Below, one piece after another: positions 9,975 to 62,631 of a DNA stretch of 64,000 bases. The notes under the pieces are model-generated. The model had not been told where the DNA came from and did no database searches. It worked only from the letters and a program-made list of their open reading frames with translations. The DNA is from Zygnema circumcarinatum SAG 698-1b (lineage: Eukaryota; Plantae; Zygnematophyceae): NCBI GenBank assembly GCA_037447605.1, contig CM074806.1:3906001-3970000 (forward strand). Direction: 5' to 3'. Numbering within the stretch: position 1 is the first letter of the stretch; every line of letters starts with the position of its first letter. A program made the translations under genes and the position numbers.

Positions 9975-10005
9975 AGTGATGGCATCGATGCCATCGTGCG
10001 ATCAA
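9975..10005. repeat. Dispersed hairpin element, copy 1
   Basis: Perfect 18-bp palindrome gatggcatcgatgccatc (9978-9995) followed by gtgcgatcaa. It matches the core seen at 10821, 18173, 35898 and 62592. Confidence 0.7.
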
Positions 10006-10769
10006 AGCCGCATGCTTTCTTCAGGTCGAGAGTGCACTCTACAAAGACCAGCTCTCAACAACCACAAAAACATGAATCCCCAAAATGACGAAATTTTACT
10101 TTCTTGCGGTTTGCGGTTCCGAGCCGGGCCTGGGCAGTCAGTCAGTCGGCTGACTGGCCCGGATTGGTCAGTTATTAGCTGATCAGTAAGTTGGTCGCCC
10201 CCGCAACTGCGACCTCTTGACCATCTGACCATTTGACTTAACTATGACCAGTTGGCCGACTTGGTTCGACCGAGAGCCGGCGGGCCTCGAACTATCTAGC
10301 CGTACGGTCGTTTGTCGTTTGCCGTGGCCATCACGGCACGGCGCCCGCCTGACGGCGCGACAGAGCGGCGGCCGGCACACCGATAACGGCGTGTACGGAA
10401 GCTGGTCTAAATAGTGGAGAATTAGGTCATGCGAAGGCAGGTTTTCTAGAAGCTTTGGACCAAACATGGAGGAGGCGCAACATGGAGGCATGCATGCGCG
10501 CACAATGTTGTTGACTGCGCAATGTTGGTGTTGTGCAAGCCTATTTTTCAACATGTCTCGTACACGTGCTGATGCGTATGATGTTACACAATAGAGAAAT
10601 CACAGTATTGAAAACATCAACAGCATATACGTGAAGGGGTGTAGATTAACATGTACCTGTACAAGACTTTTGTGATATTGTAAACTGCCACTGAGTTTGG
10701 TTTTTTGTAGCCGCATGGAAAAGACTTAAACGAAGTGCAAACGACATTCGTGAGGCCTTTTGTATTCCT

Positions 10770-10850
10770 TTGCGATCAGCTCCTCGTGGTTCCCGACAAT
10801 CATTTTTTTCATGTACAGTTGATGGCATCGATCGTGAGATCAACCCCACA
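10770..10850. repeat. Dispersed hairpin element, copy 2 (one hairpin arm deleted)
   Basis: tttgcgatcagctcctcgtggttccc...atgtacagttgatggcatcgatcgtgagatcaa aligns to the copy at 62536-62620. Confidence 0.7.
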
Positions 10851-11242
10851 ACAATCCCATTCATGAACATACAAGTCAAGTGTCTTGCATGATGAGGCGA
10901 TCCATTGTTTTTTTTTTTTTTTTTTTGATGAGGCGCATCAGCCGCGCCCTAGAGCAACAACAGCAAATTGTACGCGTGTATGCATGCATGCATGCCCACC
11001 ACCACGCCGGCTCGCCCATGGTTGACCCGCGAGGAACGACCTCCCGCCAGGTAAGGGGAATAGGGGATAGGCTCACGAGAAACGATGACGTTGCCTGACG
11101 TCATAACGAAGTCGTCCCGCCAGTCGCGCTGTCGCGCGGCCGTCCGCGCCTGGCTGTTCTTTATACGACAAAAATCCCCAGCCAGCTGGAATGCCAAAAC
11201 TGACTCTCTATTGACAGATATACACGTGGCGACATATCACTG

Positions 11243-11464
11243 GTACACGTTCACTTTCGTATAATGTTAGATGTCGGTTAGCGCGATTACAGTTGTCATA
11301 GACCGGTGCCGAGACTTTTCTTTCGTACACATTTGTAGAAACTCGTACGGCTCCCGTCAATGACTCGTGTCGTGACGTGCTGCGACTCCCCGCCGTACCG
11401 TACGGCGGCCGGCCGCTGACCGGGACGGAATGATTGCGTACGCCGACCATATGCGACCGGGTAC
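11243..11464. promoter_or_regulatory. GTAC/CGTAC motif cluster upstream of the multicopper oxidase
   Basis: Seven GTAC cores at 11243, 11325, 11345, 11395, 11400, 11438 and 11461 within 222 bp, including ccgtaccgtacgg. GTAC is the established SBP-domain/CuRE core; function here is inferred. Confidence 0.45.
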
Positions 11465-11957
11465 CGACCGGGACGCGCGGGGGGACCGGGGGAGGGCGGC
11501 TGCCCGACCGCAAAACTTTTCGGGGCAAGCGCGCAACTTCACCGGCGACTAGTTGGGATACCCATCGGACGGTCACTGTTCGCCGATCGAACCTGCGACG
11601 GCTCAAGAGTCGTCGATCTGCCGAGGTTGCGACGGGAATAGTCAACAGACGTCAATGTCGGAGTCCTCCGCAGGTCCCACACGTGTAAGGGAGCGCGTTG
11701 ACCGGGTGCACCGACCTAGCGCCCTGCCCAGCATCTCGTCAAGCTGCCCGAAACAGTTTTCGCCGGCCTGCCCGCCGACTCCTCGAACAGATACAAAGAG
11801 CCGTTTCGTGGCAGCGACCGTTCAGTTGTCCCACTGCCACTCCACCCTTCCCCCTCCCTCTCCCCTCCCTCCCCCCTCCCCCTCCCCTTCCCCCTCCCCT
11901 TCCCCCTCCCTCTCTATCTCCCTCTCCCGCTCTCCCCCCTCCCTCCCCCCCGGCGCC

Positions 11958-14900: not shown

Positions 14901-16941
14901 GATTGTTACTTGGCCTTAATTCCAATTTCAGTAAATATTACCAGAGGAGGAAGCAGTCAGGATCTGGTGGCTGAGACACCTGCCTGGTTGCGCGGCTGCT
15001 TGTGTGCCAGAGATGGGCGGTGAACAACCAATCCTACGTTCCCCCAGGAACGCCGCCGCTGCTTGAACAATATTACGGCTTGAATCCCATCGTGGATACG
15101 GGCGCGTACGACCGCCCGCAGGTGACATGGAACTACACGAATCCCCTGCTTGCTGAGGGAATCTCCACCAGCGCAAACTTCAAGAGCATCACTTATAACA
15201 TTCCGGTGAGCTCTCAGCCCGTCCTCCTGCAGGCAGGCAAGCAGGCAGGCAGGCGGGCCTTCCGAACAGTCCAGAGTTGGCTCGCTTAACCGAGCTGGGT
15301 CTGTACGGAATGGCTCTGGGTTTGTACGACTTAGCTCTTGGTTTGTACGACTTAGCTATGGGTCTGTACGAAATGCGTCTGCGTTTGTACGGTTTAGTTA
15401 AGTCTGTACGAAATGATACTTGGCTTGTACGGCTTAGCTCTTGGTTTGTACGAAATGACTCTGATTTGTGTACGAAGCTACTCTTGGTTTGTAGTTACCG
15501 ACCTCGAGTCTGTACGAAATGACTCGAGCTATACATTTTCCCGGCTAGAGAATGTTGGTCAATACTTGTTATGGCTAATGACTAGCCGTCTGGTTAACCA
15601 CTTTCCTTGTCTTTGGTCACGACGTCTTGCAGCTGAACACGGTGGTTCAAGTCGTGTTCCAGAACACGTTGGCGCTGAACAACGTCAGGTGAGCCCTGAA
15701 CTGAGCCTCGGCCTCGGCCTGGCTTTTGACTTTTTCCGCCTCATAGGGCTTGCCTTTGCGCAGTACTGGTCAAATGAAGCACTCAACTTCAAGCTTCAAC
15801 TATAAGCTTCAGCTTCAAAGATTTTAAGCATTTTAAGCAATTTTACCTCCAGCAGGCTGCAGCTTTGCAGACGGAGTTATCCATAGGGTCCCAACTTAAT
15901 ACTCTCGCTCTCCGAAACTAATGCTTGAATGATTCACTTGATGGTGATTAACCCGTGATATTGCTTTTGGATGAACTGCAGTGAGCAGCACCCTTGGCAT
16001 CTTCACGGTCACGATTTCTGGGTGCTCGGATGGGGCAATGGAGTGTATAATCCAGTGACAGATCCCGCATCTTTCAACCTTGTCAATCCCATCAAACGGA
16101 ATACCGCCACTCTTTACCCGAAAGGCTGGCTTGTTATCCGCTATGTTGCTGACAACCCCGGTAAGTGTAGCGCTTAAATGACATGACAGAATGACGAACA
16201 GCCCATCACTACTTAGTGAATTGTCCAAAGAAATTGTTCAATCTTTATCAGCTACGTCTCTGGCTTTTGGTTAATTCATGCTAATGGAACTTGGTACCGC
16301 TGGCCTGTATCTAAATGTACTAGAGGATAAGCCGCCGTAAATGAACTTTTGCATAGTGCGAGAGTATTGACGGCGTGTTGGGTGGGGGTGTTATTCCTCT
16401 GTTCCTTGTGTTCGCAGGCATTTGGCCATTCCACTGTGTAAGTCCGCATCGCCTGCTCGCTTTCTTCTGAATCTCCTGAATCTTGAAACACTCTCGAAGT
16501 TGCAATTCTCAGACTTGAAAGCCAGTTCCATGCCTGCGTTCTGTGGTAGGGGTCTCGCTCAGTCTCCCTTCCTTCACACATGTATACTTCCATCTCCTGC
16601 CCTCCATTTCCTCCTTTGCTGCATGTCCAAGCCATTCATTGGTCTTCCATTCAGCTACTGTTGTTAACAGCTTTACTTCCTCTCCTACCTGTGTGCAGCA
16701 TATTGTCTACCATTTGGTGTTGGGCATGCAAGTCAGTTTCGCCGAAGGCCTGGATCAGCTGCCGCCTCTTCCAGCAAACTTCCCAACCTGTGGCAGCATC
16801 ACTTCTGATATCATCAAGGCCGGCTTCCCTTCTTCCCCTCCCCCTCGCCCTCCCCCTTCCCCTCGACGTGGGGGCAAGCACCCCCCTGGAGTGGGACACC
16901 ATCCTCCCGGCAAAGGGGGACATAAGAAGTTCGGGGGTTAG
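11958..16941 (+). CDS. Secreted multicopper oxidase, L-ascorbate oxidase-like
   Basis: Signal peptide [21 protein letters not shown]. All four Cu-binding motifs appear after splicing: [23 protein letters not shown] and WPFHC|[10 protein letters not shown], with Met as the T1 axial ligand. Also [17 protein letters not shown]|RWAVNN and C-terminal FAEG...FPTCG as in ascorbate oxidases. Confidence 0.92.
13887..14033. mobile_element. 147-bp MITE with CAGTGGCGGA TIRs (hAT/Tip100-like), intronic
   Basis: Left end cagtggcggatcc, right end ggtccgccactg (10-bp perfect inverted repeat). Flanks attatgtc/atgctgtc match at 6 of 8 positions, a possible decayed TSD. A related copy lies at 25013. Confidence 0.75.
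15296..15520. repeat. 21-bp minisatellite with TGTACG core in an intron of the multicopper oxidase
   Basis: GTAC at 15303, 15324, 15345, 15366, 15387, 15406, 15427, 15448, 15470 and 15512, with a GTAG variant at 15491. Unit is approximately ctcttggtttgtacgacttag. Confidence 0.9.
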
Positions 16942-18134
16942 GTTTGAAGGCGTTTGGGTTATTGCTTGGGGAGGTTTCATTTTTGTCCATTTTTTATTCA
17001 ACGTGCGGTATGTTGACCGTGCATTCGTGCAAACAGCCTGGTCAAAGCATGCATGCAATGACACCAAGTGTTCTTCGCAGACACCGTTTTCTCCTTTCAT
17101 AAACGAAGCGTATGTCTTCAATGTTCGTGCGTCTTTTGTTCTGGATGTGACTAACTCCACGATGCCATGGATTGGAATCTATGTTGTGTGTTGATCTCGT
17201 CATGCTTTAAGGTCTGAGCACTTTAGGCAATCTCGCACCGGGGAAGGTCTATCTTATAAAGAGACCCTATGAAGCGAAATGTACATCCCGCTGCATTTCA
17301 ATGAAAATCAGACGCATGGACAGTACAGATTCTGTTGTAACTCCATCCATGGATTTACCACCAGCCGTGTCTCCTCCTCCTGAATCTCCAGTCTCAGACA
17401 TTTCAGACATAAGACAAGCTCAACAGATTGAGAAAAGCCCCGCCGGCCCAAAACTCTTGTTTTCAATGAATGAGTACAAGGTATGTAAAGCAGTGCCACA
17501 CTACTTGTCCCTCCTTGCACTAACCCACACATATCCCATAAGCACCTGCCCTGGCTACAGCCAAACGTCTCAGCAAGCTCTCTGAAAGCGGCTAGATCGA
17601 TTAAGGGTTCAAGCCGTCAGAAGGCTGACTCCTTTGCGTGAGGATGCGGCGCCACACTTCCTGTACATCTATACTGTCCGTACACTTCATACACCAGGTA
17701 AAAGTGGTACGGTACAGTACAGCACGGTACAGTACGGTATACTCGGACGTCCGTACACATGCGCCTCTAACACATGCAAGGCGCATCTAACCTCCCTAGA
17801 GAGTCTATGTCCCAAAACGTTGTACAGTCTCTAGTGCTGTACAACAGATTCTAATTTCAAATTTGTAATCCGACAGGTAAACTCGACCCCCCTTAATAGA
17901 CAAGTTTGCTTCGTCATTATCTACACACACGCATATATAGATCAAAAGAACAAGATGCATGCATGCACGTATGCATATATATATAGATGCATACACCATG
18001 ACAATGTGATTGCTTTTATCTTGGAGAATGATAACCCACCCCTCCCCCCATTTTGGATACCCCCCCCCCCCTTTTAATTGAGTTATTGAGTTGTTGGAGT
18101 TTTAGAGTTTTCCCCAGTTCCTTTGGATCAGTTC

Positions 18135-18210
18135 CTCGTGATTCCTCATGCTAATTTTGTCCATCTACATTTGATGGCCTCGCCATCGTGAGACCAATGC
18201 CACTTCCACT
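18135..18210. repeat. Dispersed hairpin element, copy 3
   Basis: ttcctcatgctaattttgtccatctacatttgatggcctcgccatcgtgagaccaatgccacttccac aligns to 35867-35936 and 62558-62631. Confidence 0.75.
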
Positions 18211-18960
18211 TTTCGCAATGTGATTGCAGTGAATGATTGATTCGCGATGAATTCGGTAAACGACAAGAACGAATTCCACCATAACCTGTAATGGCTAAGC
18301 GGGCCCTCACAGAGCCCAGAAAACATGGCATCTCTGTGATGTTTAAGGCATTGTTGTTTGAGGGCAAACTGGTTCCCAAATCACCAATCGAATAATTCAG
18401 TTCATACGTTGAGGCGGAAGCCCTAGAAACTATGGAAACTCGAAGAACCCTAAACGGACATCAGATATCACAAGGACACTTTCAATCACCACGATCCAAA
18501 GATCAAAATACAGAAGAAACCGAGTCTTGCTTCACATGCGAAGCAGGTTGAACTTTGAATGTCAAAACTTCACGTGATTAAGCTTTCAAGAGTTATACAA
18601 ACCGTACAGAAAATTTCTCTGTCCTTCGACCCGAGAGTTGTACTGGGCCCTTTCATTTTTCTGGTACATATGATGCTTACACGCCATAACAGAGTTACGA
18701 AAACTGGATGCCTTTGTGGGCAAAATGGAACGTGTCCTAACGGGACAGCAACTGTACACACACGTGCAGGATGAGCTGCAGGGTTGAAATAGGTTCGGAG
18801 GTCAGCCTTTGGCCGCCTCTGTTTCAAAGCTGAAATCTTTCGACATGTTTGCTGCTATGTTCAGGCGGCTAATGGACAGAGCTTCTTGAAATGCAGGAAG
18901 CTTTAGTGCAAGCCATTTCCGGTACTTACAAAGGATCCAGTCCACTGCAGTTCGCGCAGT

Positions 18961-20778: not shown

Positions 20779-20814
<36 letters not shown>

Positions 20815-23994: not shown

Positions 23995-24038
<44 letters not shown>

Positions 24039-24671: not shown

Positions 24672-24773
24672 CTGCCATGAAAGATATTGCCGTGTTCCGA
24701 AAGCTCTGCAGCAAACCACACAAGAAGTATCGTTGATTGAAGAGAAAGACAGCTAGAAAGGAGCGAACGTAGA
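24672..24773. repeat. 102-bp direct-repeat copy of 25754-25855 (splice acceptor plus start of a terminal exon)
   Basis: ctgccatgaaagatattgccgtgttccgaaagctctgcag...gagcgaacgtaga is identical to 25754-25855 except for two A/G differences. Confidence 0.95.
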
Positions 24774-25604: not shown

Positions 25605-28600
25605 TTACGGAATCAAGCTCTTGCTCCATTCTGGGTTTGATCTCAGAAAGACTGCCGCGAGCCATATTCCAAGGAAGGTGATGAACGATTCCACGGCGAA
25701 ATGTCCCTCTCCAACCAGAAGAGAAGTATCCATAAACTTTGCATACACCCAAACTGCCATGAAAGATATTGCCGTGTTCCGAAAGCTCTGCAGCAAACCA
25801 CACAAGAAGTATCGTTGGTTGGAGAGAAAGACAGCTAGAAAGGAGCGAACGTAGATGAGCTCTGCCAATGCTTCAATTTTGAAAAGGCAAGTGTGAAAAG
25901 TTCACCAGGTAGTCGATCACGGTGCCAAAGAAGTACATCGCGGCTATAATGATGAGGAACATAGCATTCCTCACAGTGTAGGACAACCATGCCGTTGCTT
26001 CCCTGCACAATTCAACCAAATCGTTACGAGAGTCTGCCAGACAGAAAGTATGGAGGCAATAACAACGACGTGAAACTTTTTGGGTTCTTCAATTCAGCAG
26101 CCAAAGCGTACTCATACATTTATCTCCTTGGGCGAGCCTGGCAAACAAAACCTCCCAATGACTGTGTCGAGAGAGTCGTCAATTAACGAAAAGAAAGTGC
26201 ACAGTTTTTTCGCGGTTATTGATCCCTCCATGCAACATCCAGGCCTTGAGAAAAGGACTCACCACCAGCCAGCACCAATCAAAAATGCAGAAAGGAAAAT
26301 AAGTGGGCCAAAAAAATAAAGGCCGATCCGATAGGGTCCATACACGCGTTCAGCTCCGAGCAGCTGCATTTATCGTTGACCAGGCAAACATCATATCCAA
26401 GTAACGACTGGCATGAGTTTGAAGCAGAAACTATTACAAAACGAATCTAATGGGCAACTGCAGAATTACAGAAACGACTTCTACAGGGAACAAGTGGAAG
26501 TGGTGTGCAGGGGGAGGGAAAGGCAGAAGGAGGGACGAAACAATCGGATCAGGGAAAGGCGGGAAGGTCTAACGAGAAGAGAATACTGCAGAAAGAGATT
26601 CAGAGTGAATGTAAGGACGCAAAAGAGTGGAAAGGGAAAAGGAATTTAGTAGAATTGAAAGGGAGAATTGCGAAGAGTAGAGAATGGAAAGGCATAATAA
26701 TTCACAGATGAATTTCTTTAATTTTTTGTGATTTTACAATGAGCGGGAGGGACAAGAAAACGAGAGGAGATGAAATACAGACGAGAGATGGCGGGGATGG
26801 AGAAAGCATGAGCCCATAGAGAAGCGGGAGAGCAGAAGCGGGAAATTGGGGAGATGGGAATGGGAAGTGCGAGAGAAGCGGGAGGACTGGGAGGAGGAGA
26901 CGAAGAAGAGCAAGCAGAAGTTTATATAAGAAATGGGGGGATGACAACAGTATTTGAAGCACAGGAAGAGGAGGGTAGACGGTACGAGCGACGCGAAGGG
27001 GAAGAAGGAAAGGACAGTGAAACATGGAAGAGATGTCCCGGAAAGATGAGTGAGATGGCGAAAGGTCAGAGAGAACACACCTTGAGAACAAGGAGCACCA
27101 AAGTTACAAGAAAAGCAGACACCGACCAGGCATCTACGTCTTGAGACACGGATTCATATATTAAAGAGAGCAATCCCCCAAATAAAGCGAAAGCTGCCAC
27201 AAAACCCAGAAGTCCCGAGTCGAACTGCAACTGCAAAAGAACATCACCATTGTCGTTAACGATACAAGAATATCAAATGTTCCAACTGCGGTCCAACATG
27301 CTCTCTCTATCTCGGATCTCTCTGCGAGAGATACTTTACTGCAAAATCAGCCACATGTTCTCCCTTGCTTGTAGAGTGCATTTCTTACCTTGTTCACTAA
27401 CGGCACAAGTGATAAACAAAGATAGAAACATTGAAAGGAAGCGGTAATTCGAAAATCCATGAACGATATATAGTCCACTGCGTAGGAATATCCGGCCATG
27501 GTCAAAACACAGCCTGAAATAGCCACCAATTCGCGCGAGCCTCGGGGACAGCAAAGGGAAACTGCAACGAGGTAGAGGCAGGCGAGCCAAAAGCAGAGCT
27601 CCCATAGTACTTCGAGCCTTTGCAGCACGCGATAGAGATCGACTAGGACGTTTGCAAGCCATTCCAAATACGGTCTGCATGAAGGACTTGCAAGGAGGTA
27701 TATATCAGCAAATGGGTGCGACAGGGAGTCACGTCTACAGCATGTGTATGGTCGTTATGTTGTGTTGATCGAAGTCGACTATTACTTGAAACTTACTTGA
27801 AGGATTTGTCACTCACCCTCCAATGGCCATAAGGAATGGCACCACAGTGGCAGTAAGGCCGATGATGCCAATTAGCCAAAAGCAGTTGACAATAGTGAAG
27901 AATTGCGACAACCAATGGCCAATATGAAATCCAGAGCCCCGAGCATCTGCCATCTGGATCAGATCTCCAAGATTTATGAGTATATCCCTGCATCACCAGT
28001 TTATGCACACCGTGAATAACTATCATAATCATCAGTGAATAAAGAGGATATCTTGCAGACATCACACTGATTCGCACACTTTTATTGATTCAAGGAACGA
28101 TGTAGCTCATGACAAGCATGCGCTAAGTTTGTTTGCTCTTTGCTTTCAGGTTTGCGTCAAAAGTTACTGCAGCCACTATGGAATATGTTCATGCCTGTCT
28201 AATTCCTCGACCGAAACTCCAATTGCATCTGCTGCCTCTATCATATGCTGACTCTCAGATGATGGCGATGCCTCCATGCGTCCCACCGCCCGTCCAACGA
28301 GCCAAGCGGAGAATCTGTCCGGAGGCAAAAAAATCTTCTCCTGTCAAAAGAAGCAGTAAAGCGATTGAAAGGTAAGTAATACGGCGCCAAGCAAGCTGGT
28401 CGGAAGTCAAAACTTTAGAAACGCCAAGAGCTGCCCCTTGCAATTCGTGATCTCAATAGGCAAATAACCAATCAGGCTTGCCCTGTTGCATTGTAGCGCA
28501 GTCCATATTAAACATGAACTTACAATCGAATTTTGCGCCTTACAAAGCAAAAGTTCTATCTGATCGGACTTCACCAAAGAATTTAGGCACATCTTTTTCG

Positions 28601-35774: not shown

Positions 35775-35936
35775 TGTTACCTTCCCGGCTACTTCTAGGG
35801 CGGGCTGCGTTGTTGAGCCTAGGCGTAGCTTTCCGCTTCTTGCTTTTTTTGCTTTTTCTTTTTGGTTTCCCCACGCTGATTTTGTCGATGCACATTTGAT
35901 GGCATCATCGCCATCGTGAGATCAATGTCACATCAC
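35775..35936 (-). other. Dispersed hairpin element, copy 4, with 31-aa small ORF (35819-35914)
   Basis: Minus strand reads MAMMPSNVHRQNQRGETKKKKQKKQEAESYA*. The hairpin GATGGC-gatgat-GCCATC overlaps the ATG. Confidence 0.6.
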
Positions 35937-35995
35937 TTTCCTGATTATAGTAAATTTTGCAGTCAAATTTAATTAGATACACTTTTTATCACATA

Positions 35996-36069
35996 TCCGT
36001 TGTCGTCCAGCCTGGTTAGGATACCTGGCTTTCACCCAGGCGACCCGGGTTCAAATCCCGGCAACGGAG
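35996..36069 (+). tRNA. trnE-UUC: tRNA-Glu (anticodon TTC)
   Basis: Acceptor stem TCCGTTG/CAACGGA plus G, anticodon arm CCTGG-CTTTCAC-CCAGG, T arm CCGGG-TTCAAAT-CCCGG. A TTTTT Pol III terminator follows at 36072-36076. Confidence 0.95.
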
Positions 36070-36919: not shown

Positions 36920-36965
<46 letters not shown>

Positions 36966-40000: not shown

Positions 40001-43000
40001 GATTTGAAGTGTTGGCTCGCGTCACCTTATAACAATCAACATGGGTATTTGTTGGTTTCTTTTGGGTGCTTGAGTTGACCAGGATCAAGAGGCGGTGGAC
40101 CTTGCGGTTCGCGACCTTCCCCCTTCTGGGGTTGGCCAGGACAGTGGGTTTGACCCCACAGAGCTTCTTGAGGGGAACAAGGGGAAATCTCTTCCTGCCA
40201 TAGTGGAGCAGGTTCGAGATGGGTCCACCGTTCGGGTGATGCTGCTCCCCTCGTTTCATTACGTCCAAGTGTACATCGCAGGAATTCAGGTTCGTGTTCC
40301 AATTCTTTGTCTCTTAGTTTCTGCTGATGTTTGAAGCTCCTGCAAGCGTGTTCTCGGAGGATGTTCTATTGTTTCTGACCGCATAACGCTGGAGCATATC
40401 ATTATATTGTGCTTATCAAAGTTAAAGACTCTGCGACTCTAAGGCTTGTTTTCATGGTGGCTACCTTACCATATGTTGCTTGACCGCAGTGCCCATCCGC
40501 TGGAAGGAGAGCTCTTGGTTCAGTCGACCCGGATAAAGTGTCTAGTGAGGCAGCCAATGGCAATGCTGCTGCAGCAAGCAACGGAAGCAGTGTGGACCCC
40601 TCTCTGAAGGCAGAGAGTGCAGTGCCCAGCATTGCTCAGCGATTGGCTGCTTCAAATGCAGCAGCCGGCGACATCCCTGCCGAACCATTCGGATTGGAAG
40701 CGAAGCACTTCACCGAAGTGCGCTGCTTGAATCGAGATGTAAGTTCGCTATTTCTGCACCTGTTTCGGCCTTTGATTGCTCAGGTGTGACTTTGGACATT
40801 TGTAGTTGGTGATTGGTAGGGCATTCTTTAATAGAGAGATCTCTTCAGGCCATTTGATGACTGGGAGAAACTTAGGTTGCCAGGGCGAAGTGATTGTAAT
40901 TCGTTTTCCTTTCCGCAACTGTCCTCTTTCCTGCTCATACAATCTTCGAAGGATTTTGCTTAAACTTTGCTTGGGTTATGTACGGATGACACAGGTACGG
41001 GTTGTACTTGAGGGCTTGGATGGTCGGGGTACGAATCTTGTCGGCTCCATTTATTATCCTGATGGAGATACTGCCACCGACATTGCACCTTTGCTCGTAA
41101 AGCAGGTAAGGCCTTCAACCCATTGCTCCCTTTTCTCACTGCGAGGGGAAGTGCAGGAAGTAGATACCTTGTGTTCTCATGTCTCTGTATTGTACGCTGC
41201 TTTGCTACAACATGTGCTTGCTTGGATATGTCCTTGCTTCTGATTTTTCTTTTTTTTTTTATTGCGGGCAGGGACTGGCAAAAATTGTGGAGTGGAGTGC
41301 AGAATCTTTGGAGCCCTCTTACAAGGCGCAATTGAAGGCGTTAGAATTGGAAGCAAAGAAAGAGCGGCTTCGAATCTGGACATCATTTGTTCCCCCACCT
41401 TCAAATTCGACAGCTGTCAGAGATGACAACTTCACTGGAAGAGTGAGTTCTGAAGCTGCAGCTTGCAATGTGCAGAAATTCTTAAGTGGCTACTGTAGCC
41501 CATTCGGAGCTGCTATATAAACTTGCTCGATTCCCTAACTCCTATCTTGAGGGGTGTAGTGATGCATGACCCGAAAGGACAAAATGCATGCCTGAACATA
41601 CTGCTTTACGTCTTTGCATGCTTTCCTGCAATTTTTTACCCCTGTAAAAAGGAAAAATCACAAATTCTGGAGGCCTTGGCGATCCCTATTCGTGACGAGG
41701 CTTTCAAAGGAATGCAAGTGGTTTCTAGGGAAACTGTTTTACTGTCATTTTGAAGGTTTTGGTGAGGTCCTTGTCACAGTAAAGCTGGAGTAACTTATTG
41801 TATTGTCCATTGCGATTGCAGGTTGTTGAAGTGGTGAGTGGCGACTGCATTGTTGTAGCCGATGATGCTGGGCCGGTTGGCAGCCCTCAGGCAGAACGGC
41901 GGGTCAATCTTTCAAGCATTCGCACACGCAAATTGGGAAATCCCCGACTTGATCAGAAGCCTGAACCCTGGGCTCGAGAAGCAAAAGAGTTTCTTCGCTC
42001 GCGTCTTATCGGAAATCAGGTGCATTGCTAAAACCTTGGGCTTGAGCGAGTTGTGAATCTCAAAAGTTGAGGAAACTCCTGTTGTTCCCATTGCGGTAGC
42101 TGCTACTACTTTCAAATGAAGGGAAGTAGTCTTGATGTGAGAACATGGGCTTTCAAATGAAGGGAAGTAATCTTGATCTGAGACCATGGGCTTTCAAATG
42201 AAGGGAAGTAGTCTTGATCTGAGAACATGGGCTTTCAAATGAAGGGAAGTAGTCTTGATCTGAGAACATGGGCTTTCAAATGAAGGGAAGTAGTCTTGAT
42301 CTGAGAACATGGACTTTCAAATGAAGGGAAGTAGTCTTGATCTGAGAACATGGGCTTTCAAATGAAGAGAAGTAGTCTTGATCTGGGAACATGGGCTCGT
42401 CACATGCATTACCTTTTGTTGCCTTTTTGCATGGTGTCAGCGACACGTCCATCCTCCATCCGTTTTGTTTACTCCCATACTGAGGTTTGACCACTTCTTG
42501 GTTATCCCCACCAGGTCTCAGTGACTATGGAATACACGCGTAAGATTACAGCTGGAGAGGGGCGTGACCCTGGACCAATGGAGGGCAAAAGCATGGCATT
42601 TGGGACTGTCATTCTAGAGGCTGCATCAAAGCAGGAAGCTGCAGAATCAGGGAATGCTTCAACACAGAATGGAATCAATGTGGCCGAAATAGCAGTGGCG
42701 AGGGGTTTTGCCACTGTTGTGAGACACCGCGATTTTGAGGAGAGGTCTCTTCACTATGAGGCACTCCTTGCAGCTGAGGAGAGAGCGAAGAAGGGGAAGA
42801 AGGGAGTGCACTCATCAAAAGAGCCCCCTATCGCGCATCTGAACGATCTCTCCACACAGGTGAGAAGAGAGGTGGTTTTGGAGTAGAGCTTCATGTCAGC
42901 CCTTTGTGTAGCAAAGTCAAGCACTTTAGACTTTGAGAAGATGCTTCAAACTGTGCCAGGTAATGTATAGTGTAGAGAAAATTTTGTTCTGTTGTGCAAT

Positions 43001-48349: not shown

Positions 48350-48445
48350 AACCCGAATCTCCTAGACCCAACTCTGACCCTAATCCTTACCTTAATCCTA
48401 ACCCTAACGCAAACCCTAACCCTAACGCAAACCCTGAACTTGACC
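48350..48445. promoter_or_regulatory. Degenerate telo-box (AACCCTAA) cluster upstream of mTERF
   Basis: cctaaccctaacgcaaaccctaaccctaacgcaaaccctga. Similar clusters occur near 3965, 14826, 53100 and 57650. Confidence 0.55.
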
Positions 48446-49666: not shown

Positions 49667-50158
49667 CAGTAGGACCCCATCATATTTTCCACCTCCAAAA
49701 GTGCGTCTCCAAGAAATTCGCACCAATTTTGCCGAAACCACTTTTTGTACGGTAACTTTGTGTTATCCGTATTATCCGTATTGCTCGTACTAGCCGTACT
49801 AGCCGTACTAGCTGTACTAGCCGTCACGGGCTTACGCAAAACGCACCTAATCTCCCCGCACGTGCCGCCGTGAGGCGCTCACTCTTCTCCCGCTGTTCTT
49901 GGCTTCGATACGATACGATACAATACGATACGAACCGATACGGTACTATCCGTACTAGCCGTACGAGCTGTAGTAGCCGATGCGGTACGATGCGGTTTGA
50001 TATGCCAGCAAACGATACGATACGACACGTACGAACATACATGAACTCTAACACAATTCCTCTCGCCTGTTGGTAACACAGACCTGATATTTGCCAAAAA
50101 CAATATTTTCGCCGGATATTTGCTAAAACCAGGTGGAAAATATGATGGGGTCCTACTG
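49667..50158. mobile_element. 492-bp MITE with 28-bp TIRs and TA flanks (Tc1/mariner-pogo-like)
   Basis: TA|cagtaggaccccatcatattttccacct ... aggtggaaaatatgatggggtcctactg|TA is a perfect inverted repeat. The interior holds (tagccgtac)n and (gatac)n. Confidence 0.8.
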
Positions 50159-51021
50159 TATTTACAGTGTCCTTTTTCTGAATGTAGTGTACGTTTTCGC
50201 CGGGCAGCAAAAAAAAAGGATTTTTTTGGCGAAAAATGCTGTTTCATACTTTTCAGAATAGATACAGACCTTTTTTCGTCGGATGTACGGATGGTGATTT
50301 GAAATGTACGAAGCGAGCGCGGCTACAATGTATAAGGGCGCACACGTGGAGCGACATGATTGGTCGCGGCAACATATGACGTGACAAGTATGTTTGGGAC
50401 CGTGACGTGACGAAACGAGACGCGACAAAAGTGGAGTCCGCGGATTTCAATCGGAAATGGCGGGAATGAAAACTGACAGAAAAAGATAGGGCACATAACG
50501 TAACGTGTTTCAGAGCGCCTCTCCCCTCTTATTGGCTTCGATACGATACGATACGATACGATACGTAAGTTTCGACACGATACGTTACGATACGGTACGG
50601 TATGATACGTACGGACAAACATGAACTCTAACAGAATACCACCCGCCTATTGGTAACACGAACCTTAATATTTGCAAAATCAAGATTTTCGCCCCATATT
50701 TGCCAAAACCATGGCGAAAATATGAGGACCCCCTATACCACAAGTTAGTGTGTACCATGCGATGTCTAACTATCATATACTAACACTAACAAATTTGGGC
50801 ACACACAAAGCACGACAATGCGAGATATATGAAAAAAACTGCATTTGAAGGTCAATCATTTTGAGTGAAATTTCGAATTTTTGTACGAGAATCAAATAAC
50901 GAACACAAACCAAAAGATTTTTTGCACATACAAACGGTAACAATGTTTGACTTGCCCTAGAATCAACAATGCCCTCCCTCCCTGGTCTGCTGTCTGAGCA
51001 CAACTTTTTTTGCCTCGCACA

Positions 51022-53480
51022 TCACCCTTGTCTCCGTTGACCTTTGTACATCTTCTCATCCTCAGACTCTCCCATTCTTATGACCTTATCCCCACCAGCA
51101 CCAAAGTCTTCATCTCTGTAATGTTTCGCTCCATTTATAGGGTCTCTTTTAACAGTTATCCCTCTCTGATTTTCACTTTCTCGTTCTTTATGTCGATTGT
51201 GTCCTCGCCCACCTCCATCTTCACCGTCTCTCAACCTGCCCTCGTCATAACCCTTCGTCCTATCGGGAGACCTCCTTGAGCTCTCTCCCGGCCTCCTCTC
51301 ATCATCCTTCTCCGTCCTCATTCTTTGGGGCTCGTCAGCCTCTCTATCATTATGCACTGACTCCTTATGTCTTCTACTTCTCCCCTCCTCTCTCTCCCTC
51401 TCCTCCCCTCCTCGCCTCCTGCTACTGCTGTGCTCTCCATGCCTATCTCTCGACTCATTCAAGCTATCCAATCTTCTGCGCTTCTCCAGGCTTTGAGTCG
51501 TCCTACTCTCTTCCTCCGCCTCCTTTTTTATGCTCTTCTTGTTCGGAACAGGAATGGATGGATCTGAAAGGATGGAGAAGAGACTACCACCACTCTCCCA
51601 TGGGCTGCTTCCGAGTTTCCCCTCCGACCCACGGGCTCCTGTACTACCTCTTTCCTCCCCTTCATCGTCCCCCCATCTCCTCTTGCCTTGCTCTCCTTCC
51701 TCCTTTCCCGGTACCACTCGGGGAGGCGGGGGCAGCATGTCCCTGCTATTCTTTTCCACCCTTACCGTTTCTCGAGCAGGTGGCCCTCTCGGCCCTCTGT
51801 TTCCTTGCGGACCACCTCGCCCTCTCCCTCTTGAAGGGCCCCATTCGGAGTCGTACTTTCCAGCCCCCCCAGTGTTTGCATTCCTCTGCGATCAGAATTC
51901 AGACAAAAAAAAATGACCGTCAGACACGATGATGGCTTGTCATCATTTGATCACGATCTGCAAATAATCTGGGTTGATGTTTGACACAGTGAGGCACACA
52001 TAACATGCTGACAAGCATCTCCCCATAGTTAAAAATGTCTCCACCCTGCAAGTTATTCTGGATATCTCACGTAGAGAGGCTAAGTGCCAGGACTCGGAAC
52101 GCATTGCAAGCCCTAAAGTTACCTAAACCTCACCTGCTCATCGTGAGAATATTTGCATGTGATTCCCCGCTTGCACTCCCCTCTCTGAAACGAATGGCAA
52201 ACCCCGTTGGCCTCCCTCTGCTTTTGGAACTCCTCCTCGTCGATCTCCGCCAATCGCTTATAGTTTGCAACATGATCCACCTTCAGGATACGTCCGCTAA
52301 CTCGAGCCCCATTTAGATTATCTGCAATGAACAGCCCAACGTCGACAAGCCAACCAAAAAGCACCAACTTCAAACCAATAAGGAGCATTTCAACAGTGTA
52401 TTGCCTTAAACCAAAGCCATAGCCGTTTGACTGCGATTCATACCTGCCGCGTATCTTCTGTCAGGCCGTACTATTCCTTTCATTACACAACTCTTGCATT
52501 TTTCCCGCGCAATACCAAGGACTAAATCGCCTGCCTCTAACCAAAAAAATGGTCCTTTCCAAAGCCGTTTCATCGACTGCCTAACACGGGTCTTTAGGAC
52601 TTTGAGGGTTTTCAGACTGCTCAGCACAAATGAAGCTTATCACTGACAGGAAGGCCTCGAAATCTAAGGCTTTATGGTTAAAATGCTATTTAGAACATTT
52701 TGAGCTATTAAAATGGACAAATAGAAGGATCAACACATTTCACCCTTCCCGCTTTGTCGTTTCCTTGAAACACAAACGTCCCTCGTCTATACAATTCATG
52801 CTTTTGAGAGATGTGACACTCACCAACAGCAAGCACAGTGCTTCGCTGGTCTTCATACGCTAAAAACGCGAATCCTCGCGACTTTCCCGTCGCTCTATCC
52901 CGCACCAAATTTACATCCACTATTTCGCCATACCTGTAGCAAGGTACACGGGTCTCTCTCAACATGGGGTTTCAAACTCAACGAGAAGTGCCTGAGGTGC
53001 AAGAGAAGTTTCACAAGACTGCAGTTGACGAAAAGTACATGAAGGGCACAGCAGGCGCACAACGGTCATGAAGCCTAACCCAGGTGTAAACCTGCACTGA
53101 CGCAACCCTAACGCTAGCCCTAACCCTAAACCTAAGGTTCCTGAACCTGAAAGGGACATCGTCTATCGGAAACTCTTTACCACGTCAGCACACCCTACCT
53201 CCTGTTCTCGCCGCGCCCTCCTCCCTTCTCTCTCTCACTTTCTCTATCTTCCTCTGATTTTCTCAGGAAGAGTGGAAAAAAGGGGCGAATTTACAAGGCA
53301 AACTCACTGCGCGAAGACGGCGAGGAGATCGCCCTCCGTGAGGTCGAACGGCAGCCCTCCCACAAAGACATAGGCGGAGTCACGGTAGCGCGCGTGCCAA
53401 GAGCCTTCATCAGAGACGCCTTTGGCCACTTCCTGCGCCGATATCTTCTGTGTGTTCTTTATCTGCGTCAAGGGGTTCAT
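51022..53480 (-). CDS. RBMX2: RBMX2/IST3(Snu17)-like RRM plus CCCH zinc-finger splicing protein (RES complex)
   Basis: MNPLTQIKNTQKIS...WHARYRDSAYVFVGGLPFDLTEGDLLAVFAQ|YGEIVDVNLVRDRATGKSRGFAFLAYEDQRSTVLAV|DNLNGARVSGRILKVDHV...CHSFQRGECKRGITCKYSH, followed by a long charged tail. Confidence 0.92.
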
Positions 53481-54427
53481 GGCGCGCCACTCCCCTGCGC
53501 CTCTGCGAGCGAGACACAGAGAGTGAGAGCGAGATAGGGAGAGAGAGAGCGAGAGGCGAGGAAGGCCGAGAGAGGGAGCGGGAAATGCGGAGCAGGTCTG
53601 GGTTTGAACGAGGGAGGGAGCCTGGAGGCAGGCAGGGGGCCGGCGCGGGTTCGATACTCGGCAGCGCCAGAAAGGTGAAATTGCAGATTGTATGTGCACA
53701 GGCATATGGAAAGTCAATTTCAGCTTCAAAAAGTTGAACCGAGCTGGAGCTTAGGAGCTGAGGACCGAGCTGAAGTCCTCGGTTTGATTTTAGACTGGTT
53801 TAATTTCGCTGTGATGTCTGCATCCCAATGGGTTCGAGAATAGTTTGGGAAAACTATGGCGCGAGGAAACGTGGTTGGCTACTACTGAGCAGAACAGAGG
53901 GGGTGTGGGGGGGGACAAGAGGTTCGTCATTTAAGGATGAAGAAAGAGGAGCAGCGAGAGCAAGAGCAGGTCTCAAAGGAGATGCTGATATGCGCAAGTG
54001 AGGGCGCTTAATTAGACTATAGACCAAGTGTGTCTCATTCAATCAATTGTGAAGAATAGTAAGTCAAGAATAACACGACAATGCCTTGTGAATGACTAAA
54101 GACTACAGCATCACGCAATGGATGAATCTAAGCGTTCTCAGCCAGCCTCATTGATTGATATTGACTGCAGAAACCTGCCCATTACTATAAGTTTTCTCTT
54201 CTTCCCGGAACAGTAAGTGCTAAAGCGAGCTAGAAACCAAAAAACAAAGTAAAAGTAATAGAGGCATGCTGATGCAGCAGCCACCCTTCATTCTAAACCC
54301 TCGTGCTTCAACGCCATAGCCGTGACTCCCATTAGGTCTCCCCTGCCACCTTAGTCCAGGTAATGGCTTGACCCCCCCCCCTCGCCGTCAAGCACAGCTT
54401 GATTCTTATTCGAAGGCAGAGGGTCAC

Positions 54428-57411: not shown

Positions 57412-57885
57412 GCAGCAGCGCCACCTCCCGGGGCGCGCCCTTTCACCCCCCGCCCCCCCTACCGCATCCTCCTCCGCCCCTCTCCTCCGCCTGTCTCGCC
57501 CTCTCACGAGCGGAAGATCCCCACCACGCGCCTTTTACTGCCACATACAGCAGCACTGCACGCCCAGGAGGAGCAGCGACACACAGAAAAGAGAAAGGGG
57601 TGGTCCCGAAGTAGCTCCCCGACAGGAAATTTTCCTCTCTGCCCCCAGCAACCCTAAAAAACCACCCTGCACTGCCCCCAGCAACCCTAAAAAACCACCC
57701 TGCACTGCCCCCAGCTCTGTTACGAAAAGAAACTACTTTACTTTACGCAATCCCTCGCCCAGCGCTACACCCTCGCCGCCGGGAAGCGCAGGGGAACCTT
57801 AGTCTGTGTCTGTGAGGCGGCCCTCGGCCCTTCCCTTCCCCTTGCACAGCCCCCACCGCAGTCCAAAGCAGCGCAGCCGCAGGGC

Positions 57886-57887
<2 letters not shown>

Positions 57888-57978
<91 letters not shown>
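57888..57978. repeat. (GA)n microsatellite, about 45 units
   Basis: Uninterrupted GA run. Confidence 0.95.
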
Positions 57979-57981
<3 letters not shown>

Positions 57982-58589
57982 GTCGCTAGAGCGGCCCTGC
58001 CAGCCAGCGCTCAAAACGTTTCTTTTCTTTTCTTTTTCTTTCAAGGAAAGGGCAGCGAGAAAAGGCTGCCGGCCAAGGGGAGAAACGTCAGGTTCAAGAA
58101 ACGTGGGGGGGGGGGAGCACGGGACTGGTTTTTGGAAACAAACTAGTTTTTAGGGCTCCACGTCAAATGCTGGTTCCTTGCCCATGTTTTTCGTCCTCAA
58201 TGTTGCAAACTCAGCCCGATTCAGGTTTTTTATCAAAAACCAGGAGCCGCCCCGCACCTGCGGTTCCAGTTTGAAGCTAGCAAGGAGGTCGGACTGAAGA
58301 TGGCGACAAAAACGGATCTTCCAATAATAGCACGTCACGTGGCAGCCATTTCTTCTCTCATTGGCTGTCATGGCCGCAGGTCAATTTTTTTGCTCATTTT
58401 GGTCGCCAGGTGGAAATTTCGTTACCTTTTTTACCATAAGATTTTTTTTTTTTCCCCCTAAAAATAAAGGTGACGCGGAGTTGACTGAAATTTCTGCCGG
58501 CGGCGGCATAGGTCCGTACCGTACGGACACGCTTGGCCTCTGCAGAGTCGGCTGCGGGTAACGACAAAAGGGGCGACTGAAAGTAGCGG

Positions 58590-58651
58590 CTGACTGACTG
58601 ACTGACTGACTGACTGACTGACTGACTGACTGACTGACTGACTGACTGACT
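58590..58651. repeat. (GACT)n microsatellite, about 15 units
   Basis: Uninterrupted ctgactgact... run. Confidence 0.95.
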
Positions 58652-59481
58652 AGGTTTTATGGTATGGGTTTTTTTTTCTTTGTAGTGTATCTAGACAAAA
58701 AAGGTGTGTAAATAGTAATTCCCTTAATATATTATTCCAACAGATGGAGATGACGGGTCCTAAAGCTTTCCCAGCACTTGATGTGAATAGGCGACAGTCG
58801 GTCTACAGAACTCGGCTTTCAGCAACGGAGCAACCGTGAGTGCCAGATCCATGAATGACCAGAGAGAAGAACTTGAATTTTTTTAAGATTGCGAGGATCA
58901 TTGCTCAACAGCATGAACAACAGAACATGGAATTCATGCGCGCGCTTCACCGGAGCAGCGCAAGTGGCTCTTACAATTGGACTGTACACCTAGGAACGAA
59001 GGGAAAGGAAAAAAAACAGCTGACATCTACACTCGCTCCCGCTCTCACGAGCTCGCGAGCTCGCCCTCTCCCTCTCTTTCTCTCTCTCTCTCCCGCCCCC
59101 CCTGTCTCCCTCTCCATCTCTCTATCATCCGTAGTTCATAACCCCTAAGCACTTGCCTTCGCTCTCCGTCCTCCCACCGCGCGCTATCTCATCCTTCCTT
59201 CCCAAAAGCCTTGCGAAGCTAGGTCCCATCGCACAAGCCCCCTCTCACTCGCTACATTGCAAGGCCAACTGCAGCAGAGTAGAAGAACTAGACATTGTAT
59301 GGCTACAGAGCTCCTGTCCCCCTCCAATCTCTCTCCTCTTGTATATACACAGACGAATTACACACACCGCTGTTTTCCTAGATGGAGGTACTCAGCTCCT
59401 TAATAAAACCAGCGCTCCTTTAACCTCGACGACCCTCACTTTCTGCCCATGCACCATTCCTCTTCTCCTTCTCGCCTTGCG

Positions 59482-61902
59482 TTATCTTCCCTGGGAAGGT
59501 GCTCTCATAGCCATGGCTGCCACATAAGCATGATTCAGGGCTTGCTGCGCTTTCACCTTCATCAATCTGTGCATGAACTGATCTCTGGACAATGCACGTA
59601 TATGCCTCAGATACATCTCCACTGACAATAGCCGTCGCTCATTGTCATCTTCCTGGACCGCCTTTTCCAAGGAATAAAGAATATCTTCGATTGCTAAGTC
59701 AGCACAGCTCGCTTCCAGCATCTGCATCGACAATACATCAGCTGGCTCGAACGCTGCATCGATGTCCAACTCTACCGTTTCTCTGTCGTTAGCCTTCAGC
59801 CAGTCTTCTAAGACGTCTGCATTTGTCAACATAACCTGAATGCGGAGAAACCAGCAAAAAATGGTAAGGATGCAAGAAAAATGGGCTGTATTCAAGAGCT
59901 TGCAACCCTAATTCCTTCCATTCAACTCGGTATGCCAATTCTACCGCTTGCAAGGTGATACTTCCGCACGGTTGTGTAAAGGACATAGCTTGTACCAGTC
60001 TTGTGTCCAACTACCGCCAGCAGCCATTCAAACAAAAGAACGACAGGATCTCCGCAACTGAATTCGACAAAAATACTACGGAATCTACTAACTACCGCAG
60101 CTGATATCCTCAGCCCATTTCCCTTCACCTTCAGAGTTACCTTCCGCCAAAGCTCTAAACGGACTCAATTATCTTTCCTTCGTTAATCCCAGGCTCATGA
60201 CTGTTGATCAAATTAACTGCGCGGGCCATGATGTCCTTCGCTTACCTGCAACTGATGCTCCAGCGCCTCCTTCTCCCTGTTCAACTCTCTCAAACCCCTA
60301 TCAATCGCTTCCGCTCGTTGATTCAGCAGTTGCTGGTTGCTTATCTGTTGCTCCAAGTCTTGTAGTGTGTCTTTATTAAGCCTTTGAATATCTTGTTGTA
60401 GCTTCTCTGTCAATGTATTGATCGCCTTACGCCTGAAGATCGTCTCAGGATCTTCTTGTGGCGGAGGCGGCTTTTGGTAAACGTTCTGATATACCGGCTG
60501 CGCTTTTGCCGTGCTGGCATATACCGGCTGGACTTTTGCCGTGCTGGCATAGAGCGGTGGTTCAAATCCAAACATAGAGGAGCAAACCTGCACTAGTTCT
60601 ACTAAGTTGGATCTTGGAAAAAGCCATTCCCTCAAATATGGAACATTCACGAGCCCCGATGCGTCAACAAAAGGATGTCGTGCTTGGATAATCATGTCTT
60701 GAGTAGGAACTACATAAAAAAGAGGGGGAGTTTTGGGAAATCCGTCCAATAGCCATAACTTCACCGGTATGTTGTAAGTAGCGGACTGGTAGTACATAGG
60801 AATCGTCCCAAGCAATCGCAGGAGCTTGGCAGATCGACCATCATTGAAGATGAACGATTCAGGCTTTAACTGCAAAAATGCAGACCAAATTCACCAGAAA
60901 AAAATGGAAGTGAGCTTCACAAAAATAGAACCATCATATCATTTTGCCGGTATATTCTAAGTTGCTCAAAAAAAATCGTAGTAGCCCATAAATAAAAGAG
61001 TTTGATTAGTTTAGTTAAACAAAATTTCTTTAAAGCATGCAAACATGAAGAAATCCGATATACAAAACGAATACAGAGAAATTCCTGCGAATTCGCCACC
61101 TTTATGCTTAACACTATGGCATGACTCACATTGATAATTTAAAATATTGTGCAGTCCTAGTACTTCAAATTCACTCTTTACGAAAAAAAAGATCCTCCTA
61201 TATGATGGAAGGGTTAGGAAGAGCAGCGGAATCAGCTTGTTTAGCCCCAACCAAAAGTTGAAGGACAAGTGGAAAGTACGCCATGCCATGCAAACTCAGC
61301 GCTGGATATAAAGTAGGTGCCTTATACTGCACGCTCAAATCCTCTATGAGCGATGGGCAGACACATCCAAGGCAAAGTGATGAAACCCCCCGAGACAAAG
61401 CAAGAATTGTGCATTTCCACAGCACAAGCACGTAGAAACCCTCTTCTATGATGCATGCATCCCCGTCTGGGGACCAGAGAGGATATATGTAGAACAAGCA
61501 GCGCGAACCCTTGAACCACCAAAAATTCAGCTAAAGGAAAAAATCAGATTCAGCGCAGTAGAAGCTGGGACCTCCATACTGGGCGCCCATTTTAGCCTCA
61601 ATTTCAACCATATATTTTGGTATATCTGCCTCTCTGACGACCAAAGAGTGACAAGAGGCCAGGCAGAAGAGACAAGAGAATAATGGTTAACATCCACAAT
61701 GATTTGAATCCTAAAATAAAACACTAGATATACATACCTCCAGAGTGGGAAACTCCTGCATGACGGCGCAAAGTTGCTGCCGTATAGACCACTTCGAACT
61801 CTCTTCATACGGAAGGGCACCCGGCCCTCCCTGTGACAACATACTGTTCAGAAACTGCATGATCGCGGCCTGCGGCTGATGCCCATTCATTGCGATCGCC
61901 AT
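59482..61902 (-). CDS. ELC: ESCRT-I subunit ELC/VPS23/TSG101
   Basis: QFLNSMLSQGGPGALPYEESSKWSIRQQL, UEV domain FNDGRSAKLLRLLGTIPMYYQSATYNIPV...HPFVDASGLVNVPYL, a coiled coil, and steadiness box DLAIEDILYSLEKA...YLRHIRALSRDQF. Three exons. Confidence 0.93.
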
Positions 61903-62439
61903 GGCTGCAGAGCCCTAAGGGCGGAGGAAGAAAATTTCAGGATATGAAAGCAACAGGGAAGAACATATATGTCTGTGTCAATCAATACGAATAAAATCTG
62001 CACAAATTTGCTGCTTATCAAAGTAAAAAGTGCGGTACAGCCGTGTCTCCAAACCCTACAAGCAGCAGGCGGAGGGAGGATAGAGGAAGGCACGAATTGA
62101 AGGGCCCCTTCAGGAGGATGCACGAGGTGGGGAGCCGTACTGTACGAACGACGCGTGTGAATACGGCCCTTTTACTGGCGGCTACAAAATTAGTTCCCTT
62201 CAGAAACCCGCACCTGTCACGGTGGGATCCGATTGACGGAACGTGTGAGGAGTGGTCGTGATTGGCTGCCCGCTGAGGAGTTTTGCTGAGGAGCACACGT
62301 GGCAATAAGTTCGGCGTTTCGGCGTCGGTCAAAGTATGAGGAGCTCGGACCACGCGGAAGGCGCGGATTGGGCGCCACATGTGATGGGGCTGTTAAGCGT
62401 ATTATTGCGAAACCCGTTATACGACGATTTCTGATCGCG

Positions 62440-62631
62440 ACAATTTCCGTCGCGGCTGCTTTCAGGAGGACTTGAAGCGTGGTTGAGCCTAGGCGTAGGT
62501 TTTTGCTTCGAGCTTTTTTCTTGTGAGCTTGGGTTCTTTGCGACCACCTCTGCGTGGTTCCCCATGATGCTGATGTTGGCCATGTACATTTGATGGCATC
62601 ATCGCCATCGTGAGATCAATGCCACATCACT
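62440..62631 (-). other. Dispersed hairpin element, copy 5, with 39-aa small ORF (62489-62608)
   Basis: Minus strand reads MAMMPSNVHGQHQHHGEPRRGGRKEPKLTRKKLEAKTYA*. Same hairpin and start context as copy 4. Confidence 0.6.

Follow-up and report, generated by a model that had tools for sequence, protein, structure and literature searches.

Five copies of a hairpin-bearing element and their genomic context

Five related stretches of DNA were found in the 64-kb Zygnema window (the whole stretch of DNA that was analysed), each of them lying between Pfam-supported genes. Copies 1, 2 and 5 occupied head-to-head intervals, upstream of genes, with copy 5 flanked by ELC/UEV (− strand) and GPI2 (+ strand). 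Copy 3 lay in a convergent interval, 1.2 kb beyond the oxidase stop codon. Copy 4 was located 70-230 nt past the stop codon (35708) of an open reading frame with a pseudouridine synthase match, in the orientation of that gene, and a tRNA-Glu began 55 nt further on. As divergent, convergent and tandem intervals were all occupied, the copies are not consistently associated with a gene end.

A pattern search of the window for exact GATGGC-N(1-9)-GCCATC returned four matches, at 9978, 18173, 35898 and 62592, versus 0.03 expected. With blastn and an nhmmer profile the number of copies came to exactly five, each of them on the + strand (E values between 1e-18 and 1e-26), the additional one being a degenerate hairpin copy that starts at 10821 and is without the 3′-arm; neither method detected a further copy on either strand of the 64 kb. 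These searches agreed with an earlier note, made from the letters of the sequence, which had listed five intergenic copies in one orientation at these places. The two-sided chance of all five copies sharing an orientation is 1 in 16, which alone is not significant. The density in the window was approximately one copy per 13 kb.

Copy 1 (9931-10018, + strand; nhmmer E = 1.4e-18) was the most diverged of the five. Its clear homology to copies 4 and 5 by blastn spanned 9977-10013, and its hairpin (9978-9995) is now a perfect 18-nt palindrome. Copy 2 was placed by nhmmer (E = 2e-22) and by alignments at 10765-10856 on the + strand; the 3′-arm of its hairpin was gone via a 5-nt deletion, leaving remnants between 10821 and 10833. 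Copy 3 (18014-18215, + strand; E = 4e-23) was a 202-nt insert whose bounds were set by a flanking 12-nt repeat. Its hairpin, GATGGC-CTC-GCCATC, was found at 18173-18187, and homology to copies 2 and 5 started at 18117. Copy 4 (35777-35940, + strand; E = 2e-24) and copy 5 (62447-62632, + strand; E = 1e-26), the latter a 186-nt insert, encoded hairpins at 35898-35915 and 62592-62609 respectively, both with the loop ATCATC. A local alignment of these two copies ran from 35777 to 35988 and from 62444 to 62680.

Metagenomes were also searched for related loci with a 20-base pattern. This gave 21 matches, approximately the estimated chance number, which were rejected as family members because the profile matched the pattern alone at every locus.

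Common 3′-end, hairpin tail and body

All five copies shared a sharp common right end, approximately 25-30 nt after the hairpin GATGGC-loop-GCCATC, while similarity on the left side faded or stopped at differing points. Measured from the right end, homology extended leftwards for 37-88 nt in copy 1 and approximately 90 nt in copy 2, with copy 3 reaching approximately 95-100 nt and copies 4 and 5 reaching 155-190 nt. The mutual homology of copies 2 and 3 started at the same point, and copies 4 and 5 may share the same starting base; such shared starts would be better explained by a discrete short element than by 5′-truncation at random points. Mean identity was 76% in the 40-nt tail block versus 51% in the 50 columns upstream. 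The stem was intact in four of the five copies, with loops of 2, 3, 6 and 6 nt, and was followed by GUGAGAUCAAUGCCAC and then a few short units containing CAC.

Consensus folding of both strands gave only the 6-bp hairpin, at −7 to −9 kcal/mol, and fold z-scores of the copies were between −0.5 and −2.6. Covariation in the stem, which had been proposed earlier as a check on the hairpin, was not found: there were no compensatory changes across the five copies, the stem being either invariant or lost, and the covariation term of the consensus fold was positive.

The conservation of the hairpin block well above the body, together with the position of copy 4 shortly past the stop codon of the pseudouridine synthase-match open reading frame and in that gene's orientation, could suggest that the copies act as a retroposon-derived cis-acting signal between genes (a 3′-end or termination element, an insulator or a promoter module), with the hairpin under host selection. 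We consider this quite unlikely, as the contexts differ (head-to-head for copies 1, 2 and 5; convergent and distant from the oxidase stop for copy 3), the stem was lost in copy 2 and selection on the source elements is a simpler cause of tail conservation.

Direct repeats at the flanks

The earlier note had seen no target-site duplication. This is corrected here, as direct repeats, both exact, flanked copy 3 (12 nt) and copy 5 (7 nt). The left repeat of copy 3, CAATGTGATTGC (18002-18013, + strand), recurred exactly on the right flank (18216-18227, + strand), where it began directly after the tail, and the pair is a putative target-site duplication. A repeat of 12 nt at the flanks was reached in 0 of 300 shuffles; across the 64 kb, approximately ten distinct sites had an exact 12-mer repeated at the copy-3 spacing, and several of these sites belonged to tandem arrays. 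The copy 5 repeat, ACAATTT, was found at 62440-62446 and 62633-62639, exactly at both limits of the homology to copy 4. No clear flanking repeat was found for copy 4; a degenerate one (CTTGTTA and CCTGATTA) would tentatively give bounds of 35780-35939. The flanks of copies 1 and 2 contained no repeat above chance. The lengths of the two exact repeats, 12 and 7 nt, are compatible with target-primed reverse transcription and not with a transposase. The two empty sites that could be reconstructed both read GACAAT(TT)GTGAT at the 3′-junction.

The minus-strand open reading frame

Translation of the minus strand confirmed that copies 4 and 5 encoded open reading frames of 31 codons (35819-35914; MAMMPSNVH...SYA*) and 39 codons (62489-62608; MAMMPSNVH...TYA*) that agree in their first nine residues and in the terminal YA*. 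The ATG lay in the palindrome, as had been noted, and the minus-strand readings given earlier for copies 1 to 3 were as described. The earlier note had offered a micropeptide family as one of two explanations, the other being a mobile element. In its fullest form the former describes a minus-strand gene family for small basic proteins (MAMMPSNVH...) in which a regulatory hairpin contains the start codon, to which could be added that the frame continues for approximately 25 codons through copies 2, 3 and 5 with one 3-nt length difference. The evidence did not bear this out. The open reading frame was intact in only two of the five copies (4 and 5); an in-frame stop was present at codon 12 in copy 3 and at codon 13 in copy 1, and copy 2 was without the first ATG. 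Selection on the codon frame, a check that the earlier note had proposed, was not apparent, as the three codon phases had even shares of variable sites (13/22, 11/22 and 11/23), a comparison of low power with five short copies.

The Lys-rich middle of the open reading frame corresponded to the poly-T tract of the body. An alignment of this tract between copies 4 and 5 contained gaps of 4, 2, 2, 9, 1, 1, 2 and 3 nt, and since these are mostly not multiples of three, the middle peptides of the two copies are not homologous. The start and stop of the open reading frame fell in the two best-conserved blocks of DNA, and these blocks extended beyond both of its ends. A + strand frame, ...HLMASSPS*, was equally 'conserved', which a palindrome would be expected to produce. 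Neither the two minus-strand open reading frames nor two open + strand frames matched a Pfam family at E values up to 1. A 45-amino-acid stop-to-stop reading shared three 5-residue words with no protein among 5.8 billion clusters, in a search which covers only proteins of approximately 25-79 amino acids. No coding signal was apparent on either strand of the copies, and a small-gene family is highly improbable. Most likely, the conserved small open reading frame is a by-product of the hairpin in a decayed retroposon tail: the arm GCCATC gives ATGGC on the opposite strand and the poly-T tract gives the lysines.

Two further gene-related candidates were rejected. An exon on the + strand, with GTGAG as its splice donor, would meet stops just upstream in all frames in most copies. 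A 5′-leader or upstream open reading frame of a minus-strand gene would have such a gene downstream for copy 5 only, and for copies 3 and 4 would extend into 3′-ends in antisense orientation.

Other element classes and structured RNA

A profile search of the 64 kb found no reverse-strand copy and thus no terminal inverted repeat, in agreement with the earlier note. LTR-type ends were absent, copy 3 having the ends TTTTAT...TTTTCG, and so was the CTRR end of Helitrons, the tails ending in ...CACTTTTCG and ...ATCACTC. When the whole window was scanned with Rfam 15 at gathering scores, only the tRNA-Glu passed. An E-value scan of copy 5 gave best scores of 13-16 bits at E values above 1, versus gathering scores of 35-70, and identified no tRNA, 5S or 7SL-like head at E values up to 10. 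ARAGORN likewise found only the genuine tRNA-Glu in the window. The observation that Pol III boxes are missing was upheld by ARAGORN and Rfam, neither of which detected A or B boxes. Without a tRNA, 5S or 7SL-like head, the element is not established as a classical SINE.

The five copies are unlikely to derive from another mobile class (a Helitron end, MITE or solo LTR) or from a gene for a structured small RNA (snoRNA or miRNA). The elements are short and intergenic, and a short palindromic hairpin approximately 20-30 nt before a sharp 3′-boundary, with variable sequence upstream, is a likeness to Helitron 3′-ends. The Zygnema hairpin, at 6 bp, is however shorter than the usual Helitron palindrome of 16-20 nt, there is neither a CTRR terminus nor an A/T insertion site, and direct repeats are present at the flanks. 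A MITE would have an inverted partner end, of which there was none. A solo LTR would be expected to have TG...CA ends, which are lacking, and duplications of a fixed length of 4-6 nt, whereas those found here measure 12 and 7 nt. A small RNA is opposed by the low Rfam scores, by the stem of only 6 bp, by the fold z-scores and by the absence of covariation.

Comparison with known retroposons and proposed origin

Of the two explanations in the earlier note, the mobile-element reading was borne out and can be narrowed to the tail of a non-LTR retroposon, because the copies have a common 3′-end and a variable 5′-extent, lack terminal inverted repeats, are better conserved in the tail than in the body and, in the case of copies 3 and 5, are flanked by repeats of 12 and 7 nt. 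Most likely, the five stretches are decayed remnants of old insertions by a non-LTR retroposon family belonging to this streptophyte alga. They would be either 5′-shortened LINE copies or copies of a short non-autonomous element of approximately 160-200 nt with a borrowed LINE tail.

In stringent-type LINEs and SINEs, including a plant L1 lineage, a 3′-end stem-loop conserved above the rest is typical (PMC3747384). Pairs which share such a tail include UnaL2 and UnaSINE1 of eel, and LINE1-1_ZM with ZmSINE2/3 of maize (PMC3747384). The Zygnema copies resemble these pairs in having conserved last 40-60 nt with a short stem-loop and a conserved 3′-flank, with poly-A not needed, and in their common 3′-end, variable 5′-end and putative target-site duplications of variable length. 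As the earlier note had stated, the copies contained no poly-A tail; a clean terminal microsatellite was not found in them either, which is a difference from the stringent-type pairs. They also differ in that the stem sequence is fixed and not covarying, and in that the window contained no partner LINE: among its open reading frames of ≥150 amino acids there was none encoding a reverse transcriptase and followed by such a tail. In the maize pair the loop is conserved (UCU), whereas the loop of the Zygnema copies is 2, 3 or 6 nt long. Copies 3, 4 and 5 are also similar to classical tRNA-derived SINEs in their length of 160-200 nt, their dispersed, intergenic distribution and their LINE-like tail, but neither the head nor the A and B boxes of that class were detected by ARAGORN and Rfam. 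Copies 4 and 5 include a block, GGTTGAGCC, which may bear no more than a loose resemblance to a B box.

The non-LTR retroposon proposed here would be transcribed from what is the + strand in this window, and the last 40-60 nt of the transcript would carry the stem-loop GAUGGC-loop-GCCAUC and the 3′-flank GUGAGAUCAAUGCCAC. By analogy with the stringent-type LINEs and SINEs, the reverse transcriptase would recognise this stem-loop tail and copying would start at the nicked target, leaving a target-site duplication of variable length. The existence of a LINE partner is presumed. As source elements would need the tail in order to stay mobile, subfamilies would keep similar tails even as their bodies diverge.

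The main value of this finding lies in annotation. At the density seen in the window, a compact algal genome could contain thousands of copies of the family. The palindromic tail makes look-alike ATG-started open reading frames on both strands, and these could mislead gene finders or readers into calling regulatory hairpins or conserved small genes. Masking of the family would clear this recurring false signal. It has been argued that the LINEs of early green plants depended on recognition of a specific 3′ stem-loop and not of poly-A (PMC3747384), and if a LINE partner were confirmed, the Zygnema family would provide a streptophyte-alga example for this argument.

Readings in which an abundant element is more than junk were also considered. 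It is improbable, though conceivable, that the family has a sequence-preferring endonuclease or that the host has co-opted its tails as a signal between genes, and either would, if true, give the element such a role. Translation of a peptide from the minus strand is the least probable of these readings. The idea of a sequence-preferring endonuclease was raised because the two reconstructed empty sites share the same reading at the 3′-junction.

Repeat copies and neighbouring genes

A pattern search of the window for GATGGC-N(1-9)-GCCATC gave four matches (9978, 18173, 35898 and 62592) against 0.03 expected, and a further copy at 10821 (copy 2) had lost the 3′ arm of the hairpin through a 5-nt deletion. 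Short-word blastn and an nhmmer profile, made from the five copies themselves, agreed on exactly five copies in the window (E-values 1e-18 to 1e-26). The repeats that the earlier note had placed at these five sites were therefore present, and the repeat family is real. All five copies were on the + strand, in agreement with the single orientation claimed earlier (two-sided chance of 1 in 16 for five out of five), and neither blastn nor the profile found a comparable match on the reverse strand of the window. A metagenome scan with the repeat pattern returned chance matches only.

A rough gene map was obtained by running Pfam on the longer reading frames of the window. Copies 1 and 2 were located in the head-to-head interval between a PLAC8 gene (~7.9–9.4 kb, − strand) and a multicopper oxidase gene (+ strand, from ~11.9 kb, with its stop near 16941). 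Copy 3 was in a convergent interval, 1.2 kb beyond the oxidase stop; a UDP-glucuronate-decarboxylase-like gene was mapped to 19.15–22.2 kb (− strand). Copy 4 was 70–230 nt beyond the stop (35708) of a + strand ORF with an RluA-type pseudouridine synthase match, just ahead of a eukaryotic tRNA-Glu(TTC) gene (35996–36069, + strand) that begins 55 nt after the copy and ~290 nt after the ORF stop. Copy 5 was in the interval between ELC/VPS23, which has a UEV domain (first exon from 61902, − strand), and GPI2/PIG-C (from 63048, + strand), which stand head to head ~1.1 kb apart. As the five copies in the window had no common position relative to genes, a purpose-built gene-end or promoter signal was unsupported there.

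Termini and insertion footprints

The right end was common to all copies, roughly 25–30 nt past the hairpin, and read ...GCCATCGTGAGATCAATGCCAC followed by ATCAC/TTCCAC-like units. The left limit of similarity differed among copies: it was clear for 37 bases in copy 1 and for ~90–100 in copies 2 and 3, and copies 4 and 5 matched each other across 155–190 bases. Mean pairwise identity was 76% in the 40-nt tail block versus 51% in the preceding 50 columns of the body. Neutral decay of relics from a single source would give even divergence along the length; this uneven divergence suggests that the copies derive from different source elements, each obliged to keep the tail. The stem sequence was invariant wherever present (loops of 2, 3, 6 and 6 nt), with no compensatory changes among the copies, and its predicted stability was modest (−7 to −15 kcal/mol, z-scores −0.5 to −2.6 for 38–45-nt pieces).

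No target-site duplications had been seen earlier. Copy 3, however, was flanked by the exact 12-mer CAATGTGATTGC (18002–18013 and 18216–18227), the right one starting immediately past the tail and the two delimiting a 202-nt insert (18014–18215). A repeat of 12 nt was reached in 0/300 shuffles; exact 12-mers of any kind recurred at 150–400 nt in about ten separate places in the window, several within tandem arrays. ACAATTT was present on either side of copy 5 (62440–62446 and 62633–62639), giving a 186-nt insert; these 7-mers were not significant alone, yet they coincided exactly with the two points where similarity to copy 4 stopped. The flanks of copy 4 gave a degenerate repeat candidate only, and those of copies 1 and 2 nothing above chance. 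Both pre-insertion sites that could be reconstructed had a similar 3′ junction: copy 3 gave GACAAT--GTGATTGC and copy 5 gave GACAATTTGTGATCA, and the sequence to the right of copy 4 (CTTTCCTGATTAT) was similar to them. This likeness, noticed post hoc and in two reconstructed cases, could reflect a target-site preference or tail-target pairing.

Class of element

The unequal length of the duplications and the lack of inverted ends argue against a DNA transposon. A solo LTR is opposed by the same inequality and the absence of TG...CA termini, and a Helitron by the absence of a CTRR terminus and the presence of flanking duplications. These features fit target-primed reverse transcription, and the five copies are best read as relics of non-LTR retroposons with a conserved 3′ stem-loop. 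The mobile origin, one of the two readings proposed earlier, is supported, and the "unclassified" element is narrowed to this class by its ends, duplications and tail.

Stringent-type LINEs require their 3′ end for retroposition, and there are SINEs that share it (PMC3747384). In one plant L1 lineage, divergence is 0.14 in the last 45 nt versus 0.57 in the whole element; these 45 nt fold as a stem-loop, a structure termed common in stringent-type tails (PMC3747384). The Zygnema family matches this pattern of LINE/SINE tails, with a putative LINE partner. No small-RNA-like head was detectable with ARAGORN or in an Rfam scan of copy 5, and the SINE label is therefore withheld. The finding is an ordinary one, of little interest outside annotation.

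The small ORF

The minus-strand ORFs of copy 4 (31 aa, 35819–35914) and copy 5 (39 aa, 62489–62608) were as the earlier note described, and had been offered there as a possible family of micropeptide genes. Their ATG is within a palindrome arm, GCCATC being GATGGC on the opposite strand. The common MAMMPSNVH falls on the most strongly conserved stretch of DNA and the common YA* on a second block conserved in copies 4 and 5 (GTTGAGCCTAGGCGTAG); conservation of the DNA extended beyond both ORF ends. The + strand frame ending ...HLMASSPS* was equally "conserved", as the palindrome dictates. The Lys-rich middle is a T-rich tract in which the copy 4/5 alignment has gaps of 4, 2, 2, 9, 1, 1, 2 and 3 nt. 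A net difference of 24 nt, which preserves the frame, has a chance of one in three, and poly-A codons account for the lysines. In-frame stops were present in copies 1 and 3, and copy 2 had lost the first ATG. Variable sites by codon phase were 13/22, 11/22 and 11/23, a comparison of low power that favoured neither strand. A Pfam scan of the small ORFs gave no match, and when the 45-aa reading from stop to stop was used as a word-search query, no word-sharing protein emerged. With stops, a lost ATG, flat codon phases and no Pfam match, a micropeptide family is unsupported.

Other features of the window

The window has a G+C content of ~48% and contains GA/CT microsatellites. An mTERF gene was mapped by Pfam to 47.1–48.3 kb (− strand). 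The plant-type telomere motif (AACCCTAA and its variants) formed interstitial runs at 3965–3990, 48370–48443 and 53104–53129, and there was a tandem array of ~nine copies of a 41-nt unit (95–97% identity) at 42068–42436. Two 102-nt direct copies with 98% identity (24672–24773 and 25754–25855), 1082 nt apart, may represent a local duplication or the two ends of a young insertion. A patch of short repeats of the GATAC and GTACTAGCC types (49760–50725) included a 147-nt pair with 78% identity (49999–50145 and 50579–50725).
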